From IMG/VR virus record IMGVR_UViG_3300035181_000471, positions 62,001 to 126,000 of that record: DNA of 64,000 bases, one strand, 5' to 3'. Of the stretch, positions 1 through 63,400 are shown one piece after another (the first letter of the stretch is position 1; each line of letters opens with the position of its first letter). Both the position numbers and the translations under genes were made by a program. Below the pieces are notes generated by a model. The model was not told the DNA's origin and ran no database searches. It saw nothing but the letters and a program-made list of their open reading frames with translations.

Positions 1-29
1 AGTGTGCTTACCAAAGCCACTTCAGCCCC
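1..29 (-). tRNA. tRNA, 5' part only (truncated by window edge; isotype unknown)
   Basis: Minus strand reads GGGGCTGAAGTGGCTTTGGTAAGCACACT: acceptor 5' strand plus D-arm with GG, 6 nt downstream of the CCA of tRNA-Ala. Confidence 0.7.
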
Positions 30-35
30 ATATAT

Positions 36-110
36 TGGTGGAGCTACGGGGAGTCGAACCCCGAACTTTTGGATGCCGTCCAAATGTGTTCCCGCTAGCA
101 CTATAGCCCC
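36..110 (-). tRNA. tRNA-Ala(GGC)
   Basis: GGGGCTA/TAGCTCC acceptor with G3:U70, anticodon arm TTTGG-ACGGCAT-CCAAA, GTTCGACTC T-loop, encoded CCA. Confidence 0.93.
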
Positions 111-117
111 ATGATGC

Positions 118-191
118 TGGCTCCAAAAAGGGGAATCGAACCCCTGTCTCTGACTTAACAGGTCAGCATCCTACCATTGGATGATTTTGGA
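118..191 (-). tRNA. tRNA-Asn(GTT)
   Basis: Anticodon arm CTGAC-CTGTTAA-GTCAG, GTTCGATTC, G73, encoded CCA. Confidence 0.93.
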
Positions 192-270
192 ATAGTAAGG
201 TCTCTCCCTTGTCAAGCCTGGATGATTAGCGGCTTTCCCTCCGAGGTTGGGTTGGACAGTGAATCGTTTT

Positions 271-981
271 TTAGATTGCCTTCACTATCTCATTCGCCTG
301 ATTTTTACAAACCCAGGTGTCCAACTTTTTAAGGACTAATTGTCCATGATCAAATTCCCAATGACAGTTGGGGCAAAGACCAACCAGATTATCGGGGGCA
401 TTGATTTCTTTCAGTGTAGCGGAATCTGGGAAACTCATTACTGCTTGAATATGGCAGACCTCCACATGCTTACTATACCCACAATTAAAACAAGAATCGG
501 TCTTGTGGCAAACACTAGCTATTCTTTGAGCGTGTTTTGTTATAACAGACCTAGCTCTCTGCCAATTAGTGCCACCGGATTCAGATTTCCCAAATAACTC
601 TAACTTTGTTACATGGTCTCTTTTCCCTTTTAGGGGGTCTTTCTCTGCTTTAATCTTAACTACTTTTTCCTTTTTAGGTCTAAGTTTGTTATTGTAAGAG
701 GCCGCGCAAGAGGTGGAACAGAAAATCCCGCTTTTAGTCTGAGATGGGACTCTGTGAAACTGCTTGGAACAGTTAAAACAAGAGACCTCTAATCGAGTTA
801 TGTTATGATCGTGAAAGCATCGTTGGGAGCAGAATAATTTGATTTGCCCTCGTCTTTTCGATATAATTAAGTTGGCCTTAGATTGAGTGGTCTCTTTCCC
901 ACACTGCTCACAAACTACAGGAATGCGATCTTTGTATTTCTTGTCCTTATATTCGATCAGCAGCGTTTCTAGTTGAGTCAT
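271..981 (-). CDS. HNH homing-endonuclease-like protein with N-terminal CxxC...FCSxxC zinc-binding repeats, inserted in the tRNA array
   Basis: CFNCG...EVCHI...NLVGLCPNCHWEFD HNH signature; ATG at 981 preceded by GGAG (ORF track starts at TTG 1002); AT-rich. Confidence 0.85.
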   Translation of the reverse strand: MTQLETLLIEYKDKKYKDRIPVVCEQCGKETTQSKANLIISKRRGQIKLFCSQRCFHDHNITRLEVSCFNCSKQFHRVPSQTKSGIFCSTSCAASYNNKLRPKKEKVVKIKAEKDPLKGKRDHVTKLELFGKSESGGTNWQRARSVITKHAQRIASVCHKTDSCFNCGYSKHVEVCHIQAVMSFPDSATLKEINAPDNLVGLCPNCHWEFDHGQLVLKKLDTWVCKNQANEIVKAI

Positions 982-1020
982 AATTTCTCCCTCTATAATC
1001 AAGAGTTAGAAAGTCGATTT

Positions 1021-1095
1021 TGGTTGCGGGAGGTGGAATCGAACCACGCTTTCACTATGAGCTTATGAGACTCTAGGCCAACCTCTGGCCCCGCT
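1021..1095 (-). tRNA. tRNA-Met(CAT), initiator-like acceptor, atypical D-arm
   Basis: AGCGGGG/TCCCGCA-A-CCA with 1:72 mismatch, loop CTCATAA, GTTCGATTC; shortened D-arm. Confidence 0.75.
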
Positions 1096-1105
1096 ATAAT
1101 TTTAT

Positions 1106-1180
1106 TGGTCCTCCAGGCAGGAATTGAACCCGCACTTCATGGTTCGAAGCCATGTGTTCTATCCGTTATACTACTGGAAG
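1106..1180 (-). tRNA. tRNA-Arg(TCG)
   Basis: Anticodon arm CATGG-CTTCGAA-CCATG, GTTCAATTC, encoded CCA. Confidence 0.92.
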
Positions 1181-1308
1181 ATAATTTCTCGGCCTTGGGG
1201 TTGTGGCCCCTCGCTTGCGTCTGACTCCCTGCCATCAGTCAGAACCGTGTATAGAGCCGCTAAGTCTTCCTACCTACTCCATACGGAGAGGGGCTCTCTT
1301 GTGCGGCA

Positions 1309-1396
1309 TGGCGGAAGATACAGGAATCGAACCTGCTTGCCTTTGACAGCCCATGCTTTCCAGGCATGTGTGACGCTCCTACTTCACCGATCTTCC
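1309..1396 (-). tRNA. tRNA-Ser(GGA)
   Basis: CATGC-CTGGAAA-GCATG, long variable arm, G73, CCA. Confidence 0.93.
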
Positions 1397-1525
1397 ATTC
1401 TATACTAGATACTGAAAGTTTTTCAATATCGTTTGGTGGTAATTTTAGAATTATTTTTTGTAAACAACTCAGACCTTTGCTCTTATTATCGGGCGGTCCG
1501 GCGAGAACCAATCTTCGTCTTTATG

Positions 1526-1603
1526 TGGCGAGGCATAGGGGATTCGAACCCCTGATCTCTTCGTAGACAGCGAAGCGGGAACTCCGGACTTCCCCAATAC
1601 CCC
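1526..1603 (-). tRNA. tRNA-Asp(GTC)
   Basis: CTTCG-CTGTCTA-CGAAG, GTTCGAATC, G73, CCA. Confidence 0.92.
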
Positions 1604-1611
1604 ATGATAAT

Positions 1612-1686
1612 TGGTGCCAACAAAGGGATTCGAACCCTTGACAAGAAGCTTATGAGACTTCCCCCTCACCTTTCGGGCTTGCTGGC
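1612..1686 (-). tRNA. tRNA with CAT anticodon (elongator Met or lysidine-modified Ile2)
   Basis: GCCAGCA/TGTTGGC-A-CCA, GAAGT-CTCATAA-GCTTC, GTTCGAATC. Confidence 0.88.
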
Positions 1687-1745
1687 AAAGTGAGAGTTTT
1701 TAACTACCCAGTGGCTCTCACACTGGTCCTGGCCGTCCAAGTCAT

Positions 1746-1832
1746 TGGTACTCCTGACAGGATTCGAACCTGCGTTGGGCTTTCGCCGCACGGTTTCGTA
1801 GACCGTTACTAATCCATCTCAGTTACAGGAGC
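1746..1832 (-). tRNA. tRNA-Arg(ACG) with a long variable arm
   Basis: ACGGT-CTACGAA-ACCGT, extra arm GGC-GAAA-GCC, GTTCGAATC, CCA; 87 nt. Confidence 0.88.
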
Positions 1833-1840
1833 ATAGAATC

Positions 1841-1898
1841 AAGACTCGTCTTTTAGTTTCATCTTAAGTGAAAGGTTTTTAGTTGCTGTGAGAGTCTT
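1841..1898 (-). ncRNA. Candidate small RNA presenting an isolated anticodon-like stem-loop (CT-TAA-GA)
   Basis: Outer stem AAGACTC/GAGTCTT encloses TTTCA-CTTAAGA-TGAAA; lies between tRNA-Tyr CCA and tRNA-Arg 5' end. Confidence 0.45.
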
Positions 1899-1992
1899 TG
1901 GTGACGCATGTAGGAATCGAACCTACTCAGGGCTTACTTGTGTGCCAACGGTTTTACAGACCGCCTCCGCTCTCCTACTCGGACGATGCGCC
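1899..1992 (-). tRNA. tRNA-Tyr(GTA)
   Basis: GCGGT-CTGTAAA-ACCGT, long variable arm, A73, CCA. Confidence 0.93.
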
Positions 1993-2117
1993 ATAGACGA
2001 GGGTTTTTAGGTTCTCCCTCAAACCAATTCACCTGTCAACCCTAAAGTTGTAGATGGTTATCATGTTATTCATTATTTAGTTGTCAGAGAAGAAGAAACA
2101 AGCCTTGACTTGTTCTA

Positions 2118-2191
2118 TGGATGGGGTAGATGGATTTGAACCATCACCTTCGGAGTCAGAGACCGAAATCCTACCGTTAGAAGATACCCCA
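2118..2191 (-). tRNA. tRNA-Gln(CTG)
   Basis: TGGGGTA/TACCCCA acceptor (U1:A72), loop CTCTGAC, GTTCAAATC, CCA. Confidence 0.92.
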
Positions 2192-2221
2192 ATTTGTGAA
2201 AGAACTGAATTTGGTTCCTAG

Positions 2222-2260
2222 AAACCGAAAACCCCGTGGTCTTTGTGGACTCACGGGGTC
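2222..2260 (-). terminator. Intrinsic terminator (putative attenuator) directly upstream of the tRNA array
   Basis: GACCCCGTG-AGTCCACAAAGAC-CACGGGGTT followed by TTCGGTTTC. Confidence 0.75.
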
Positions 2261-2282
2261 AGAGTGAAGCTTTGACTGTGAG

Positions 2283-2387
2283 TTAGTCCCAGGTGATTTC
2301 GCCATTGGCAAAGAGGACTTTGGACATACGCTGGCTATCAGGTGTCCCTGGCTGGCCTAGATAGGTATGTTCTTGAGTGCGTGACAT
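2283..2387 (-). CDS. Putative leader peptide MSRTQEHTYLGQPGTPDSQRMSKVLFANGEITWD (34 aa)
   Basis: GAGGA 9 nt before ATG; TAA about 23 nt before the terminator; below the ORF-track size cutoff. Confidence 0.65.
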   Translation of the reverse strand: MSRTQEHTYLGQPGTPDSQRMSKVLFANGEITWD

Positions 2388-2505
2388 TGAAGGTGGTCCT
2401 CGTTTACATTTTGAGCGTTTTGCTCTCTTACCTACTACTGAAAATTTCGTAAACTTCTTTTACTTTACTTTTCTATCGGGTTTGGTTTCGCTTACCCAAC
2501 ACTAC

Positions 2506-2537
2506 ACTATACTGAGGTGCCACCCGATTTTCTTACC
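2506..2537 (-). promoter_or_regulatory. Putative promoter for leader/tRNA array (GGTA-N22-TATAGT)
   Basis: Variant of the recurring GGTA-N20-21-TATAAT motif. Confidence 0.45.
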
Positions 2538-2542
2538 GTTTT

Positions 2543-2974
2543 CTAAACTTTTTTGAAGGTTGCGATCTGACGAATGGCGGAACTGCTGATATGTCCTAGG
2601 TTACGGTCACAAATAAAATACACGGTGGGGACCGAGATTCCTAGATCTTCGTTCCAATACTGCTGGTTGGTCTCGTATTGAAGGTCGCTCCCATTGCGTA
2701 GCCCACGAATTACACCATCCACGGGCCAGCGTCCATCTTCGTTTAATTCGTTGATGAAGTTCACGAGCAAGCCCTTGAACCCTAACAGTATAACACGGTC
2801 TCCGTATCTTTCTTGAAAATATCTGGCAGAAGGATTGTGGATAGCTCCTTCTTTGGATGGATTCATGCCAACGGCCACCACAACTTTATCGTATACCCTC
2901 AAAGCTTTGTCTAGGATGTCAGTGTGACCATCGTGCCACGGATTGAACGAGCCTGGGTAGATTCCTGTTTTCAT
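2543..2974 (-). CDS. coaD: Phosphopantetheine adenylyltransferase (CoaD-like)
   Basis: IYPGSFNPWHDGH, VIRGLRNGSDLQYE, HISSSAIR motifs. Confidence 0.85.
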   Translation of the reverse strand: MKTGIYPGSFNPWHDGHTDILDKALRVYDKVVVAVGMNPSKEGAIHNPSARYFQERYGDRVILLGFKGLLVNFINELNEDGRWPVDGVIRGLRNGSDLQYETNQQYWNEDLGISVPTVYFICDRNLGHISSSAIRQIATFKKV

Positions 2975-3624
2975 TTGATCCTCGATAGGATCTCAGACTG
3001 ACGCCAAGCGTATTCATTGGTGGCAAACTTACTCTTAGCCCATTCAGTGAATAGATTGTGGGGGATGTGTTCAGATAGGAACACCATCTGGCCCTTAAGC
3101 ATTTCCTGTTCAGTGAAGGACTTTCCGCCGTTTAAGAATTCAAGTTGAAGACCGAGAATAATATGTTCAAACCACTCTGGCTCTAAAACCTGCATCAAGT
3201 CAGCATCACGAATGATCTTCTGCTCAATGGTCTTGGGTGTGTGGATAAACGGATACTGGGTCACTCTAATGGTGTGTTCAATCTGGAGATTATCTAACTC
3301 CACCGTACCATACCCAAAATCCTGGAATCCCTTGACGGCCACTTCAATGTTTTCAGCATCCGTAGACCTTCCGCCTGAATGATTGAAATCATGAAATAGT
3401 GCTGACACACCAATAAGATAGCACTGACGAAAATCCAGATTATAGTATTGAGCGCCTTCGATACAGTTACAAACCATGCAACAGGTGTGAAACCAGTTGT
3501 GGTAGGGAAGAGTATTAGAAAAATTGTTCAATCTTACCTTTTCAAACATAGTATTAAACCCGAAGTCCTTGGACAACTGTTCTGCCTGATCGTATCTTGG
3601 GGAAAAGTAGGTATCCTCAGCCAT
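2971..3624 (-). CDS. HD-superfamily metal-dependent phosphohydrolase (PDEase-like)
   Basis: PYHNWFH...ALFHDFNHSG...IIRDADL. Confidence 0.8.
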   Translation of the reverse strand: MAEDTYFSPRYDQAEQLSKDFGFNTMFEKVRLNNFSNTLPYHNWFHTCCMVCNCIEGAQYYNLDFRQCYLIGVSALFHDFNHSGGRSTDAENIEVAVKGFQDFGYGTVELDNLQIEHTIRVTQYPFIHTPKTIEQKIIRDADLMQVLEPEWFEHIILGLQLEFLNGGKSFTEQEMLKGQMVFLSEHIPHNLFTEWAKSKFATNEYAWRQSEILSRIK

Positions 3625-4381
3625 TTAGTAGCTCCTCAAAAGTTCGGATGTAGTTTGTGTCGATCTCGTATCCAATTGCATTTAAGCCTAGCTCCTTAGC
3701 AGCTAGAAGTGTAGTTCCAATGCCAGCGAAGGGGTCAAGCACAATATCCTCACCAGTGGCCCCAGAGAGCTTAATACAGCGTCTTGGTAGTTCCAATGGG
3801 AAAGTAGCCGGGTGATTACCTCGCTCCTTACTACGGGACTGTATCGTCTTGTAGGGGATGAACCAGGAGTTGCCCTGACAGCGTAGATTATTTTTCGAAG
3901 ACCATCTGGCTACATTACTGGCATCCTCGTAAGGAACACCAATGGCTAAACGATCAATGGGGATATCACCAGTCTTGGTGAGATGGAAAATGAACTCATT
4001 GGTAGGGTTGATGAACCTCTTACTATTGATCGGCTTGAAGTGACCTGAGGACTTTCCATCCACGGTAATGGACTTGACCCAAGTAATGAGATTCTGAAGC
4101 TTGAACACTTTCTGTGCTTCTGCCATCACTTCAAAAGGAATCGTTGGCTTTAGGTTGGTCCCTCCAAGCTGAAGGAAGAAATGTCCATCGTCCTGAAGGA
4201 CTCTGTGAGTTTCGATGAAGATGGAGAGGAGCCAAGATAGGTAGTCGGCTCGTGAATCTGTGTATTCCCCGTAATTAGCACCGATGTTATAGGGAGGTGA
4301 GGTTACGATAACCTTAACGGACTTCGCCTGGAGAGTTTTCATACCCTCCAGGCAATCCATAGCGTGTAAAACTTGGCTCAT
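3617..4381 (-). CDS. N4-cytosine/N6-adenine DNA methyltransferase (beta class)
   Basis: TSPPY, HPATFP, LDPFAGIGTT motif order. Confidence 0.92.
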   Translation of the reverse strand: MSQVLHAMDCLEGMKTLQAKSVKVIVTSPPYNIGANYGEYTDSRADYLSWLLSIFIETHRVLQDDGHFFLQLGGTNLKPTIPFEVMAEAQKVFKLQNLITWVKSITVDGKSSGHFKPINSKRFINPTNEFIFHLTKTGDIPIDRLAIGVPYEDASNVARWSSKNNLRCQGNSWFIPYKTIQSRSKERGNHPATFPLELPRRCIKLSGATGEDIVLDPFAGIGTTLLAAKELGLNAIGYEIDTNYIRTFEELLNG

Positions 4382-6907: not shown

Positions 6908-7603
6908 CTAGACTTCTTTGATTCGAACGATAAGACCATCCTTGTTGGTGATAAGGTAGAAATCATCGTATTCATAGCTAGTTTTGGGATAGAGGGGGTC
7001 ATGGATAGTCGTGGTGCTGAGGTGCGGTCCCAGATGAATCTGTGCATCCTTAATGGAGGTTTCTGACACAGTAATGAGATACATAGAAGGGAGCAACAAG
7101 ATTCTAGAGATCCCGGTTTTCGAGCCTCTCGTATAGAATTTCTCAATTTTAACTGGTTCCACGACTTTAGCACTGAGTTGCTTGGCTGGCTTATTAGCTA
7201 CAGTTGGGACGCGAGACTTAATCGGCAGAGTAGGAAGGATATAACCAGCCAAGCCGTGCTTAACTGCTCCAATTTCCTGCATCACCAGTCCGATATCTGC
7301 CCTACGGAGGGTCATACCGACACTGGTGGAGATATCGTTACAGAACATATGAAGCTGTCTGACATTACGGTTAAGGTAATAGCCGTTCCCGCTAGGAAGC
7401 GGAGAGAACTCTTCAATCACATTTTCCTTAATTTCTTTCAGGACAAGTCGAAAAAGAGCCTCAGTCTTCTTAGCGTCAGCTTGAATGGACTTGGCCTTTT
7501 CCAACTTGGCCTTAGCCTTTACTTCCTCAGCCTGCCACTTAGTAATTAGCTCCTGACAAACAATTGGAGTAGTCCGATTCTTAATACGAGTGCGGGTTCC
7601 CAT
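6908..7603 (-). CDS. Hypothetical protein
   Basis: 231-aa ORF, TAATG-coupled to upstream gene. Confidence 0.7.
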   Translation of the reverse strand: MGTRTRIKNRTTPIVCQELITKWQAEEVKAKAKLEKAKSIQADAKKTEALFRLVLKEIKENVIEEFSPLPSGNGYYLNRNVRQLHMFCNDISTSVGMTLRRADIGLVMQEIGAVKHGLAGYILPTLPIKSRVPTVANKPAKQLSAKVVEPVKIEKFYTRGSKTGISRILLLPSMYLITVSETSIKDAQIHLGPHLSTTTIHDPLYPKTSYEYDDFYLITNKDGLIVRIKEV

Positions 7604-8346
7604 TACCTGACTCCCAAAGTGGAGGTGGCTGTCTTGATGCGACCACGGTTATTCATATCCAGATTTCGACCAGTGGCCTGACCCTTGCTGTAAGCATCAC
7701 GGTCAATGTTACACTTAATAGAAGATGCAGAGCGAAGTTTACCAACGGTATCCTTGATGAAAGTATCAACCTGCTCACCCTGCTTTTCCAGCTTCATCAG
7801 AGCATACTGAGAACCACCCTTGAAGGCTTCTGCCTTAGTGGTGTTCAAGCGAGTGCGAATAGCGGTGGCGGCACCAAGATACCACGAATTTGCGTAAACC
7901 TTGCCCTGTCCAGAAGGAGCAAGGCGGGTAAGCTGGGTGATGGCGTAGGCCAGCAAGAAGCGAACATTGGCGATGTCGCTGGGACGGCCAAAGATCACGG
8001 TCTTTTTGCCACGCTGACCACCCATCTGGAAACCCTGACCACCGTAGTTAACTAGGCGGCAGTTATTGGCGGTAGCCAAAGCGCCTGCAAGAATGGCCTT
8101 CCAGCTAGCGATACGGCCAGCCAGGAAGAGAGGCTCGGCGTCCTGGATAATCGGCTCTTCGAAAGCCTTGGACTCCTCTTCGGAGAGTTCGGCCATCGTG
8201 AGCTTGTGCTTGTGAATGAGGGCTTGAGCCATAGACATGGCGGATTCGGCCTCGTGCTGGTTAGAGCTAGAAGCCGTTGCAAGAAGCTTGTTGATCCGCT
8301 CCTTGATGGTGGTCATATTAGGTGTAGCGGTAGTGGTCTCAGCCAT
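7603..8346 (-). CDS. DUF2786-family protein
   Basis: IKERINKLLATASSSNQHEAESAMSMAQALIHKH N-terminal motif; AYSKGQATG C-terminal motif. Confidence 0.8.
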   Translation of the reverse strand: MAETTTATPNMTTIKERINKLLATASSSNQHEAESAMSMAQALIHKHKLTMAELSEEESKAFEEPIIQDAEPLFLAGRIASWKAILAGALATANNCRLVNYGGQGFQMGGQRGKKTVIFGRPSDIANVRFLLAYAITQLTRLAPSGQGKVYANSWYLGAATAIRTRLNTTKAEAFKGGSQYALMKLEKQGEQVDTFIKDTVGKLRSASSIKCNIDRDAYSKGQATGRNLDMNNRGRIKTATSTLGVR

Positions 8347-8399: not shown

Positions 8400-9539
8400 T
8401 TATTCCGAAATTTCTTCACGATCCTCAAGGGACAGCCACTCAAGAGTGGACTTAGGGCTGGCGTTCTTAAACCAATCCATTGCAGACTCTACACGACCAG
8501 AGCGAAGTGCAAACAAGACCCCGGAGTAGCGGTGCTTAAGAGCTTCAAACGCAAAGTCCTTCTGAGTCTCGATGTCCTTGATCTCACGGTAGGTTTTGTT
8601 GATGTTTTCAACCAACGAAGTGAGAGCGTTCTGGATTACAAGAATCTTATCCTGAACAAACTGAGGGAGAATGGACAGAACATCATCCACCTTCTCAGAA
8701 AGAATCAACTCAAGACGAGCCTTATTGGACTTACCCAGACCGTCACGCTGATGAGACATGAGACAGTATGCGTCACTTTTCAACTTGATACGGTTGAAGT
8801 TAGTATCAACGAGAACGAAGCCCTCAAACTCCAAAGGGTTACGGGTCTGAACATACTCTTTAAGAGCGTCCAGAGAGAAGCCGTCATACAATCTGACCAC
8901 AGGAGTAGGATGCTTAGGGTTCTCGTCCTTCCACACTTCCACATCGACTTCCTGAAGAGTATCAAGGTTGCGGATCGCTGTCAGAACCAACTTACGGTCC
9001 TTGTGGTGAACTACAACTTGATTTTCTGGCGAAAGTAACTCGTAGGCGTATGAAAAATTTGGCTCCATCGAGAAGATAAAGCGGGACCAAGATACCCCCA
9101 TGTCATGCAGGGCCTTGATAACCAAATCTCGATAAGACATACCTGAGTCATCAACCTCGTTAGATCCGTCAGGAATAGAGCGAGTCGAAACCTGCCAACC
9201 AAACTCTTCGTGGTACCATAGCGTGATCAAAGATCCATCCAGCTTCTCGTAGGTCTTGAAGTTCTCCCAATCGAAGCTAGAAGGGCAATGGCTCTCTCCG
9301 TAGTTGAAGAACTTGTTGAAGGCCCAACCCTTAACATCCCAAGTCGTAAGATCCAAGATGAGAGAGCGGCACTCCTGCACGATCTCCTCTCCCATAGGAG
9401 ACTCAATCATGGAGTAATTGAGGCAAGCCACATTCAGCTTCTCGTTTACGCGATAGCCGACATAGAACTCGGACTTGAGATCCTCAAGGGTCTTTCCAGA
9501 TCGAAGATATTCCTGAACCTTTAGCATAACTTCCTCCAA
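8400..9539 (-). CDS. RNA ligase, T4 Rnl1-like
   Basis: ECRSLI, FNKFFNYGE, YEKLDGSLI, YELLSPEN, EGFV, RIKLKS. Confidence 0.92.
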   Translation of the reverse strand: MEEVMLKVQEYLRSGKTLEDLKSEFYVGYRVNEKLNVACLNYSMIESPMGEEIVQECRSLILDLTTWDVKGWAFNKFFNYGESHCPSSFDWENFKTYEKLDGSLITLWYHEEFGWQVSTRSIPDGSNEVDDSGMSYRDLVIKALHDMGVSWSRFIFSMEPNFSYAYELLSPENQVVVHHKDRKLVLTAIRNLDTLQEVDVEVWKDENPKHPTPVVRLYDGFSLDALKEYVQTRNPLEFEGFVLVDTNFNRIKLKSDAYCLMSHQRDGLGKSNKARLELILSEKVDDVLSILPQFVQDKILVIQNALTSLVENINKTYREIKDIETQKDFAFEALKHRYSGVLFALRSGRVESAMDWFKNASPKSTLEWLSLEDREEISE

Positions 9540-60412: not shown

Positions 60413-63400
60413 ATGCCAGAACTATTTCCAGTCCAAGCTAAAGGCCCAGCAATCACTAGGCCGGAGCTTCCTTCTGCCTTAGTTAAAGTTCAAAAGAATT
60501 ACCATAAGGCTATGGAGCAGGGACGCTTTCTTGAAAGCTCCATCGGTGACGCTACTTTTTGGGCCAAGAACGCCAAAAAAGACCTGGAAGACAAGATTAA
60601 ACTCTGGATCAAGCTTCAGCTATTAGGTGTAGACGGACAGCAGGGTGATAAGGTTCGTCCCTTCCTTTACATCAAGGATGTAATTGAAATCATCAAGGAA
60701 ATGAAGGCCCTAATGGATGAGGTCATTGGGGTCATCCAAGCTCTGATCCAGATAGTTCAGCTTCTTATCGCCATTAAAAATAAAATGCAGGCCATGATCC
60801 AGGGAATTCTAAATGCCCTAGCAACTTTAATCGCTGAGATCTGCAACTGGAAACTACCTGACCTCCCCTCCCTTCCCAACCTCTTCGGAGATTTAGTTTG
60901 GGGCTGGAACGGGTTCAATCTAAACTTTAATTTTAACACAAAATTCACTTTTGACACCAAATTTGCCTTCGGGAACTGCAAAGTTGTGCCTCCCAACCTA
61001 GACATATTCAGGAACTACCCAAAGAATTTAAACATCGGTGGCGTCACCTACGGCAATCAGGTATTTAACCCTCCAATCGGAGGAATTATTCCAACCATGA
61101 ACCAGCTTAATAGCAAAGATTATTACGATTCATTTGTTGCCCCAGCCTCACAAACTAGCCCAGTTCTTTCCCCAGATTTCAATCCTAACTCGGATATGGC
61201 CGGATCTCTACCAAAGGCAGAGATCGTGGTATCAAATTTCTCCATGCCACCCTCCATGTTTGAAGAAAATGTTGTAGCCCTCATTCTTCCCGAAGCCGTG
61301 CCTCAGGTGGATGACCCTGACTACAACGACATCCAAGTTCCAAACAACGGCCTAAGCTCTCCTAATGCCTCCACACAGGCTAGAAGACTGGATCTATACA
61401 ACCTGTTCTCCAAGGAAATCACATTAGCAAAAATCATCGACAACAACTTTGATTTAAACCGAGCCGCCGCCTGGGTTCTATACCTGAAGAATGCAAGAAC
61501 CTTGAGAAAGGGTTTGTGGATTCCTGAATTCCAGCATGTTTTTGAAGAATTTATTCAACCTACTATCGCGTATCTAGAAGCTAATCCTGTTCCTTATAAT
61601 TCCTTCGAAGGGGAAGTAAAGCGTGGACCTAAGTCCCTCCCACTCATTGATAAGTTTATTTCGTTTGCTAACGCAGATGACGCCAACCACACCTATTGGA
61701 TGCTATCGTTCATTGAAGCTGGGCTACTTGGGTATACTAGAGAGGTCAGATGGGATTCCTATGCTTCTGATGACTATCTATCGAGAGTTACCCTTGATGA
61801 TTTGGACTTCTTCCCTGCAACCTACAATTCCACATTTACTAGCATCGTAGAGTCATCAAACGGGAAAGCCAACTACCCTCAACTCATAAAATTACCTTCT
61901 CTTACAATTGATCTAGTCAACCAAGCCGTAGCTAAGGGAGAGGTTGACATTGAAAATCACACTACCTGGAGAACTTCTAGAACCCAATACAAGTTCGTTT
62001 ATGATCAGTTTGCAAATGCCACCGAAGTAGATAGATACTCCCAGTTCTGGAGAGAGTGGTCTGGAAATTTTGACTCACTGATGCAAGAAGATGGTTATGT
62101 TCCTTATGTAATGAACTACTGGCTCATCCTTGATTCTGCCGTAAGTCCTCTTGCGAGTGGTGAATTATTCTCTTATTTAAAGACCGATTACATGACTCGT
62201 GACTTGGGATGGAAGCCCGGAGATGGACTACTTAATCTACCCAAAGCCGTCTACTTCAATATTGATCCAGGTTGGAGACCCGATGATTCAAACAACGGAT
62301 GGAGTGCAGATGGCAAGACCTTTGATGAACAAGCCTTCATCTCTCGTCCTGATATCCTGGCTCTACCTATTCCAACACAGATGGCGATGATGGATTTAAA
62401 TAAGTCCTATGCCACTGTCCTAAAATTCCGTGATACTATGTCAGCCGCTATCGACAGTGAGATAACAGCTATTCAAGCAACCATTGACGAAGCCTCTTCT
62501 GTAGTCGGATTCCAAGTCTCCACCTCGGACAAACTCACGCTTCTCACTAATGAACCTTATGTGATTTCCTTCCCCACTATAGTATTCGACCACACTAAGA
62601 ATGTTGCAGACCCAACCAAGTTCATTGTCAAAAAGACTGGGGACTACACTGTGGCTGGAGCCTTCTACACTAGCACCTCTTCTACCCCAGCCACTAGAAA
62701 AGTTGAGATTCTAGTTAACGGGAAAACCCTACTCTCCAACACCTCAGACAAAACTACCAATGAGGCTTTAATTGGTTTGAGTGGTGCGCTCCCATTAGTC
62801 GAGAACGATGAGGTTCAGATCTTTATATCTCAAGACGGTGTTAACCCCGTAGAGCTACTTCAGGACTCTACAGTGTCCTTCATGGTCACAGTGTCCGATC
62901 CAACAGTTGTGGCCGCTCAGAGTGCCTCCTACGGCTACCCGGTGGGTATTGGCTCCATCTTAAACCTCACCGCCTCATTCATCTCCACCAGCGGTAAAAT
63001 TCTCCCCATTCACCCTGAATTGGATGTTTCTACTCCGCCTTGGTTCGATGGTATCACTTTAAAGCCTGGAAAAGCTGATGAATCCGTGCCACTAGCTATG
63101 GAATACGGCAAGGTCTACTCAATTGATGAGCCTGTCTTAAGCCCAGGAATGGTAATGTTTGCTGGACCAAACGGAGTAATTAACCAGGACTACAACACCA
63201 CAGCCGCATCTTGTAGGTGGATTGTAGTGGTAGGCAAGGCCATCTCTCCAACTGAGTTTGTATTCCAGCCCCATCTACCCACTGACCAAGCCAAGTCCGG
63301 TGGAGGAGCCTCAGTGAACGATTCCAACTATGTCCATGAACAGACTACACCATCTAGTGCCTGGGTGGTCCACCACAATCTAGGTAAGTATGTCTCGGTT

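Follow-up and report, generated by a model that had tools for sequence, protein, structure and literature searches.

The leader unit and its conservation

The 64,000-nucleotide window analysed here (positions 62,001 to 126,000 of IMG/VR record IMGVR_UViG_3300035181_000471) is part of a 221-kb contig of an uncultured phage. On its minus strand, to which all leader elements belong and whose coordinates are given as positions in the window, a cytidylyltransferase-like gene is followed by at least 30 tRNA genes beginning with tRNA-Gln(CUG). In the gap between them lies a self-contained leader unit of about 200 nt (Table 1). It consists of a Shine-Dalgarno (SD) sequence 9 nt 5' of an ATG, an open reading frame (ORF) of 34 codons and, some 25 nt beyond the end of the ORF, a G+C-rich hairpin with a T-run that resembles an intrinsic terminator and ends 30 nt before tRNA-Gln. 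An original prediction, made from the sequence alone, had read this arrangement as a leader-peptide attenuator that gates the tRNA array. The parts it named are present: ribosome binding site, ORF, terminator and first tRNA lie as described, and the ORF encodes 19 of the 20 amino acids (Cys is missing) with 29 distinct codons. The C-terminal stretch without a repeated residue is longer than was proposed, 16 residues instead of 14. On balance we take the unit to be a ribosome-dependent (leader-peptide) transcription attenuator heading a phage tRNA array, in which a non-repetitive leader replaces the codon run.

Six lineages of uncultured freshwater phages possess the leader ORF, the terminator and an antiterminator ahead of tRNA-Gln(CUG) and a tRNA array, which bears out the expectation that relatives would share the architecture. 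They are the window itself, L020, L009, L010 (with L014, L016 and the close P0128 variant L032-L037), L017/L018 and L023. All come from metagenomes, and the identifiable source names point to lakes, L016 being from Trout Bog Lake; L020 is the most abundant, with 25-27 contigs of up to 240 kb. The order of the parts is identical in every lineage, the leader is single-copy at each locus and tRNA-Gln(CUG) stands directly next to it (in L017/L018 this gene was not called by ARAGORN and was read from the sequence instead). The sequences of tRNA-Gln and the genes after it vary between lineages. In all six the whole unit is a conservation island between diverged flanks.

The syntenic relatives were reached via the HD-domain gene two genes upstream of the leader. 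A peptide profile search of 1.84 billion protein representatives returned only four peptide clusters and gained one additional relative. Searches of isolated phages with megablast and blastn brought up nothing related to the leader, the sole match falling in the tRNA-Gln part of the query, and exact and gapped DNA patterns run against viral contigs recovered only three lineages that were already known. Scanning metagenomes for the leader motif gave two near-identical L010 copies and two chance matches; in genomes the scan gave seven chance matches, none of which was matched by the leader profile. Synteny of the cytidylyltransferase-like gene led to six relatives, none with nearby tRNAs, and distant relatives of the HD protein (48-57% identity) had no tRNAs within 6 kb.

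Terminator-like hairpin and candidate antiterminator

The terminator-like hairpin of the window, GACCCCGUG-A-GUC / GAC-CACGGGGUU with the tail UUUUCGGUUUC, has 12 pairs and one bulge. It is worth about -19 to -23 kcal/mol and dominates every fold of the region; because of the bulge it was missed by a simple terminator scan. When the lineages are aligned from ACUCAC onwards, 98% of the cells of the nine aligned terminator pairs are paired, compared with at most 60% once the partners are shifted against each other by one to three columns. Compensatory changes occur in two of the nine pairs, one a change from C-G to A-U and the other a 3:3 split between C-G and U-A. Covariation of terminator and antiterminator had been anticipated. 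It is found in the terminator, and the antiterminator is invariant.

The competing helix joins the end of the ORF to the terminator. ACUCAC, which shares its first A with the stop codon in the window, is perfectly complementary to GUGAGU in the terminator 5' arm and loop, and GUCA:UGAC adds further pairs in the window, so that the complementarity originally described is confirmed in full. Neither ACUCAC nor GUGAGU varies in any lineage or in the P0128 variant, although the 17-23 nt that separate them do. Half of GUGAGU (AGU) sits in the loop of the terminator, a place that a plain terminator would leave free to vary. In nascent RNA ending before the 3' arm, ACUCAC and GUGAGU pair with a probability of 0.9-1.0 in the six lineages, forming a helix of 6-8 pairs with a free energy of -7.5 to -11.2 kcal/mol. 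ACUCAC moreover starts only 2-10 nt from the first base of the stop codon. The loop position of AGU, the dominance of this fold in the nascent RNA and the proximity to the stop codon together support the antiterminator pairing. A ribosome at the stop codon had been predicted to mask it, and in silico masking 12 nt, beginning with the first base of the stop codon, reduces the antiterminator to -0.2 to -4.3 kcal/mol in all six lineages. A 9-nt mask destabilises it in only two of the six.

The leader holds further conserved structures. That of the window folds better than its shuffled versions (z about -2.4), and a hairpin within the ORF has a counterpart in every lineage. The base helix of this hairpin is CAUAC:GUAUG in the window and L020 and CAGAU:GUCUG in the L009 group, a difference of one compensatory pair, and it does not pair with ACUCAC. 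The element directly 3' of the T-run, GGTTTCTAGGAACC, is invariant in the six lineages save for one C to T change in the loop in L020. As DNA it is a near-palindrome and as RNA a hairpin of 5 pairs, whose closing pair is broken in the population variant L037; 21 bases separate it from the start of tRNA-Gln. Rfam 15 covariance models gave no match at E<=1 in 2192-2545, and their matches in 1-4000 were tRNAs together with weak, sub-threshold ones that overlap tRNA genes or lie in a tRNA spacer. A small hairpin presenting ACUCAC in its loop was considered and rejected, since it takes another register in the window, is missing from L020 and is disrupted in L018 and the P0128 variant.

Probable translation of the leader ORF

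The ORF is open in all six lineages, where chance would leave such a frame open with a probability of about 0.25 per lineage. ATG and TAA are kept throughout, and the SD motif GAGG is kept in five of the six. Measured from the ATG to a GAU, from there to a CGU and from the CGU to the stop codon, the lineages show five length differences, all of them multiples of 3. Each of the two remaining frames contains 1-3 stops. The encoded peptide is far less constant. Compared with that of the window it is 25% identical in the L009 group and 50% identical in L020; just four columns are invariant, and the ratio of non-synonymous to synonymous divergence (pN/pS) within the L009/L010/L018 group is 0.45-0.86. 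The non-coding flanks are 76-83% identical in most comparisons with the window, which is above the ORF between distant lineages. Taken together, the open frame, the kept SD, ATG and TAA and the in-frame length changes argue for translation of the ORF, and not for a conventional protein. Sequestration of the SD by a CCUC within the ORF was tried as an additional control and rejected: the position fits but the energy is no better than in shuffled ORFs (P 0.11-0.47).

Proposed mechanism

We propose that transcription starts upstream and that a ribosome would load onto the leader ORF. If the 34 codons were translated quickly, the ribosome would reach the TAA and cover ACUCAC, leaving GUGAGU free. 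Free GUGAGU would allow the terminator hairpin to form, and transcription would end before tRNA-Gln(CUG). If, however, the ribosome lagged anywhere in the ORF, ACUCAC would pair with GUGAGU as soon as the latter had been made. This antiterminator would withhold part of the terminator 5' arm, and the polymerase would continue into tRNA-Gln and possibly into further tRNAs. In other words, alternative pairing would decide the outcome, and slow decoding would be the signal for read-through. The non-repetitive codon content suggests an ORF that gauges decoding capacity as a whole and not a single amino acid, which is the weakest step.

Several observations weigh against this mechanism. At equilibrium the terminator is 4-11 kcal/mol more stable than the antiterminator. 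In L009, L010 and L018 the part of the antiterminator helix (ACUCACA in L009, GACUCACA in L010) that a terminating ribosome would cover amounts to no more than about 2-4 bases, and a footprint of 9 nt would be insufficient. Because both strands of ACUCAC/GUGAGU never vary, the antiterminator shows no covariation, and a role in sequence-specific binding would equally explain its invariance. Upstream of it there is no clear anti-antiterminator (a 1:2 pairing), and the leader ORFs contain neither a run of regulatory codons nor any tandem codon run. L020 has a weak SD and an ordinary number of codons (25 of 33). At synonymous sites the ORF has diverged 5-10 times less than the neighbouring HD gene (pS 0.08-0.23 in the L009/L010/L018 group against 0.72-0.92, or 0.72-0.79 for the same pairs). 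The whole unit is thus a conservation island whose codons are constrained at the nucleotide level, a sign of selection on the RNA for which the attenuator model has no need. Finally, a promoter-like block 3' of tRNA-Gln may act as an internal promoter and free the rest of the array from the unit.

As to kinetics, the direct path from antiterminator to terminator has a barrier of 9-14 kcal/mol, possibly an overestimate, as a pseudoknotted intermediate with CCCC of the antiterminator loop paired to GGGG could lower it. The same method gave 5.8 kcal/mol for the 2:3 to 3:4 switch of Escherichia coli trpL.

Codon diversity of the leader

The original prediction went further and held that the leader samples most isoacceptors. 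In this form, which we offer only tentatively and consider doubtful, the ORF would have been selected for the maximal range of decoding classes in 33-36 codons, and a shortage of almost any tRNA would switch on the replacement tRNAs. Such a shortage, caused by anticodon nucleases, other tRNA-targeting defences or decay of the host pool, would delay the ribosome. The delay would turn on transcription of the phage tRNAs, and the unit would shut off after decoding had recovered. The outcome, to be regarded as equally doubtful, would be a self-regulating, damage-induced tRNA supply in an island that also carries a T4 Rnl1-like ligase and an HD phosphohydrolase.

Codon diversity was compared with two nulls, one with codons drawn from the genes of this phage and one with the ORF's own bases shuffled and kept open. 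Against the first, the 29 distinct codons among 34 in the window have P=0.025. The corresponding figures are 25 of 33 in L020 (P 0.42), 32 of 36 in L009 (P 0.002), 34 of 36 in L010 (P about 2e-5), 31 of 36 in L018 (P 0.008) and 29 of 35 in L023 (P 0.05); the P0128 variant has 32 of 36. Against open shuffles the codon count of the window gives P=0.11, and its 19 amino acids have a chance probability of about 0.01.

A point against selection for codon range is that many of the synonymous switches are NNC/NNU pairs, both members of which are read by one tRNA. For this reason NNY/NNR decoding classes, of which there are 32, were counted as well. The leader has 25 of them in every lineage except L020, which has 23. 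Under phage codon usage each of these counts has a P of 0.003-0.034 (0.003 in the window). Against open shuffles the P values are 0.026 in the window, 0.16 in L020, 0.07 in L009, 0.09 in L010, 0.065 in L018 and 0.04 in L023, so the excess over random open sequence is modest (P 0.03-0.16 per lineage). Fisher combination over the three deep lineages gives about 1e-4 with the phage-usage null and about 0.01 with the open-shuffle null. The predicted conservation of diversity is borne out in most relatives, with high codon counts in L009, L010 and L018 and 23-25 classes in all six lineages, the codon count of L020 being ordinary.

The class excess is confined to frame 0, the other frames having 18-22 classes. 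The window and the L009 group, two deep lineages, have runs of 15-16 residues that are all different, and the longest such run among about 3,100 gene windows is 14. The leader samples 20 of the 25 distinct phage anticodons in the window and 19 of the 24 in L023, where 15.1 and 13.9 are expected (P 0.01 and 0.007). Codons readable by phage tRNAs are not enriched in the leader (25 of 34, null 25.4), and no enrichment of rare codons was found, an index resembling the codon adaptation index being lowish with L020 as the sole outlier. The synonymous switching that had been pointed out is present, but given the peptide it is not significant in the window (P=0.19), reaching significance only in L010 and L009. 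A Gln-specific leader was rejected, with only 1-3 Gln codons per ORF, which are not enriched and not conserved in position. A codon diversity at the random level, named beforehand as grounds for refutation, is thus not what the leader shows: the excess over expectation is real but moderate and uneven, and at the codon level L020 is an exception.

Alternative explanations

The constraint on synonymous sites would be readily accounted for if the unit were a structured non-coding leader or small RNA, in which the ORF is incidental or secondary and a protein or RNA factor sets read-through, processing or stability. Such a factor might read the A-rich block (Table 1), ACUCAC, GUGAGU and GGUUUCUAGGAACC, and the unit would then be a signal for factor-dependent antitermination or for processing of a tRNA precursor. 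We consider both the general and the specific version unlikely. They would fit motifs that are invariant and do not covary, the folding of the leader (z about -2.4), the conserved hairpin within the ORF with its compensatory pair, a tail element that is near-palindromic like a protein operator, and the lack of a good SD in L020. The region belongs, however, to no Rfam family at E<=1, and pairing between the SD and an anti-SD is no better than in shuffles. Without translation it is also hard to explain why the frame is kept, why insertions and deletions come in multiples of 3, why five of six lineages have an SD, and why stops and low codon diversity occur only in the other two frames.

A second alternative, which we think distinctly improbable, is an independent small gene for a functional peptide of 33-36 residues with its own promoter and terminator, the tRNAs being expressed by leaky read-through and from promoters within the array. 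Conservation of SD, ATG, frame and stop codon would follow naturally, and promoter-like blocks do occur within the array. Two peptide motifs, P-x-x-x-R-M/L and F-x-L-S-A-S-x-N-T, recur between deep lineages, the serine codons of the latter being swapped between TCC and AGC in L020 versus L009, and gene callers have already listed the peptide in public data. Yet a peptide that is 25-50% identical, with a pN/pS of 0.45-0.86, between flanks that are 76-83% identical is the reverse of a protein gene. An independent gene also leaves unexplained the invariant ACUCAC/GUGAGU pair with its conserved loop AGU, as well as a fixed site immediately ahead of tRNA-Gln that leaves a promoter no room. Nor has the peptide the hydrophobic, cysteine-rich or charged character of known kinds of small protein.

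That a spurious ORF merely lies beside the ordinary terminator of the upstream operon is very improbable: an open frame of 34 codons does arise by chance in about 25% of cases and the codon diversity of the window is marginal against random open sequence (P=0.11), but the unit is a conservation island in six lineages with a synonymous divergence far below that of the HD gene (0.08-0.23 against 0.72-0.92 in the L009/L010/L018 group), and 280 nt separate the stop codon of the upstream gene from the terminator.

Possible control of the tRNA array

If the unit is an attenuator, its immediate target would be tRNA-Gln(CUG). The stretch of about 40 nt between the terminator and this gene contains no promoter-like site, so that tRNA-Gln must be reached through the terminator. 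The situation beyond tRNA-Gln is different. The AU-rich hairpin that follows it may be a weak terminator or a processing site. The next element, the promoter-like block TGACAACTAAATAATGAATnACATGAT, is near-invariant, with TTGACA in place of CTGACA in L010 and L020, and a second promoter-like site precedes tRNA-Ser. Gating of the whole array had been proposed. The unit does stand before tRNA-Gln and the array, but judging from these promoter-like sequences it may gate tRNA-Gln plus read-through only.

The array itself comprises 30 tRNAs in L012 and 30 in L023. A further conserved structure in a spacer, the hairpin GAGGG..CCCUC before tRNA-Tyr, becomes GAGGA..UCCUC in L018, where both sides have changed. 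tRNA-Tyr is 94 nt long and tRNA-Arg(ACG) 87 nt, the latter unusual for an arginine tRNA; both lengths recur in L018 and L023, and the tRNA-Gln of L009 has 83 nt. These tRNAs may carry long extra arms or inserts. ARAGORN overlooked two tRNA-like genes, both with a CAT anticodon. One has an Rfam match at 54 bits; the other, with a good T arm and acceptor stem and an odd D arm, was called by neither ARAGORN nor Rfam. In L023 ARAGORN called a tRNA with a four-base anticodon (GTAA, 2695-2772) inside the array, which could be a frameshift-suppressor-like tRNA or a prediction artefact. An HNH endonuclease gene with a zinc-finger-like N-terminal part lies inside the array of the window, and the arrays of relatives have HNH genes at other places (L009 6271-6789, L032 2121-2675). 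Their varied positions suggest mobile endonucleases that shuffle the array.

Other features of the locus

The features of the locus are collected in Table 1. In the gap upstream of the leader, CAGTATAGT may be the -10 element of a promoter. The layout GGTAAGAAA-N-AGTATnAT is found 5' of the leader also in L018 and L023. As a phage promoter motif CAGTATAAT is not enriched, with 15 matches across the window where 12.8 are expected. The A-rich block could be a promoter or could form the 5' portion of the leader RNA. The stem of the small 5' hairpin is GGAGC/GCUCC in L009 and L010 and GGGG/CCCC in L023. In L009 (5441-5539) and L010 (1758-1865) the leader is preceded by a gene for a hydrophobic peptide of 32-35 residues that ends in KYW. 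The gene has a strong SD, is preceded by a TATAAT-like site and is absent from the window.

Of the genes further upstream, L017 and L020 also have those for the ligase, DUF2786, the methylase and the HD protein. The T4 ligase Rnl1 repairs tRNA that has been cut by an anticodon nuclease. The upstream island may therefore be a tRNA repair module beside a tRNA replacement module, an idea for which gene content is circumstantial evidence.

Table 1. Features of the leader locus and its surroundings in the 64-kb window
Feature	Position	Strand	Remarks
T4 Rnl1-like RNA ligase (PF09511, phrog_562)	8400-9539	-	upstream of leader, same strand
DUF2786/DUF7168 gene	7603-8346	-	upstream of leader
N6/N4 DNA methylase	3617-4381	-	upstream of leader
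HD/PDE-like phosphohydrolase	2971-3624	-	upstream of leader
Cytidylyltransferase-like protein	2543-2974	-	directly upstream of leader gap
Candidate -10 promoter element (CAGTATAGT)	2506-2514	-	pattern match, in gap between cytidylyltransferase-like gene and leader
A-rich block, then TCAGTA..AGGTAAG	2427-2470	-	near-invariant in 5 of 6 lineages; single copy in window
Small 5' hairpin GAGC-AAAAC-GCUC	2413-2425	-	folding
Shine-Dalgarno GAGGA	2397-2401	-	GAGG at same spacing in 5 of 6 lineages; weak in L020
Leader ORF, 34 codons + TAA	2283-2387	-	ATG 2387-2385, TAA 2285-2283; open in all six lineages, 33-36 codons
Hairpin within ORF, ACAUAC with GUAUGU at base	2324-2370	-	folding; counterpart in every lineage
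Antiterminator 5' strand, ACUCAC + GUCA	2273-2283	-	ACUCAC 2283-2278, overlapping the stop; GUCA 2276-2273
Antiterminator 3' strand, UGAC..GUGAGU	2249-2261	-	UGAC 2261-2258; GUGAGU 2254-2249; overlaps terminator 5' arm and loop
Intrinsic-terminator-like hairpin + T-run UUUUCGGUUUC	2221-2260	-	hairpin 2260-2230; folding, compensatory changes
Small hairpin/DNA near-palindrome GGUUUCUAGGAACC	2213-2226	-	14 nt, directly 3' of T-run
tRNA-Gln(CUG)	2118-2191	-	first tRNA of array, always directly after leader
AU-rich hairpin, then U/C-rich run	2096-2115	-	3' of tRNA-Gln; stem covaries among five lineages
Promoter-like block CTGACA-16-CATGAT	2060-2087	-	sigma-70-like; found by scan; conserved in five lineages
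Hairpin GAGGG..CCCUC	1996-2040	-	before tRNA-Tyr
tRNA-Tyr	1899-1992	-	94 nt
tRNA-Arg(ACG)	1746-1832	-	87 nt
tRNA-like gene, CAT anticodon	1615-1686	-	Rfam match
tRNA-like gene, CAT anticodon	about 1022-1096	-	odd D arm
HNH endonuclease gene	271-1002	-	inside tRNA array

Comparison with known attenuators and significance

The proposed attenuator has much in common with the trp, his, leu, thr, ilv and pheA attenuators of enterobacteria. There, too, a short ORF led by an SD is followed by an intrinsic terminator, the antiterminator shares bases of the terminator 5' arm and starts within the ribosome footprint of the stop codon, and the terminator is the more stable structure while the antiterminator forms first. 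Unlike these systems, the phage leader has no run of codons for a single amino acid, its codon use being non-repetitive, and no clear 1:2 anti-antiterminator. Of the 8-9 bases of the terminator arm, its antiterminator would tie up no more than 3-4 (6 in the window), and the controlled genes are tRNA genes instead of those for biosynthetic enzymes. The unit would work like the classical family but, lacking the codon run, is described here as a new variant and not as a member.

Dispensing with a specific codon run is not without parallel. In the antibiotic-resistance leader attenuators found by Term-seq, and in the tet(M) leader, general stalling of the ribosome on a short ORF decides between terminator and antiterminator. 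Like the phage leader, these have no specific codon run and use the state of translation as the signal. They answer ribosome-targeting drugs, whereas the output of the phage unit is tRNA supply and would close a feedback loop on decoding. In attenuators of the pyrBI/pyrE type the distance between ribosome and polymerase likewise decides, with no amino-acid specificity. Their leader ORF, however, runs through the terminator, which the ribosome disrupts directly. The phage ORF ends about 25 nt before the hairpin, and a close ribosome would favour termination. T-box riboswitches are also terminator/antiterminator leaders tied to the status of tRNA, but they bind uncharged tRNA directly and have no leader ORF. 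A T-box was rejected for the phage leader, which has no Rfam match and lacks the conserved T-box sequence and the specifier-loop architecture. A T-box-like string, GGGUGGCACC, at about 2515-2506 is not conserved in the relatives, and its distance from the terminator is 250 nt.

Phage tRNA genes are now viewed as a counter-measure to bacterial defences that cleave tRNA. Next to nothing has been reported on the control of their expression, and our literature searches found no report of a leader-peptide attenuator before a phage tRNA array. If the proposed mechanism is true, these would be the first tRNA genes to be regulated by the speed of translation itself, and theirs would be the first attenuator whose leader samples many codons rather than repeating one. 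Such a unit could serve as a general reporter of decoding capacity.

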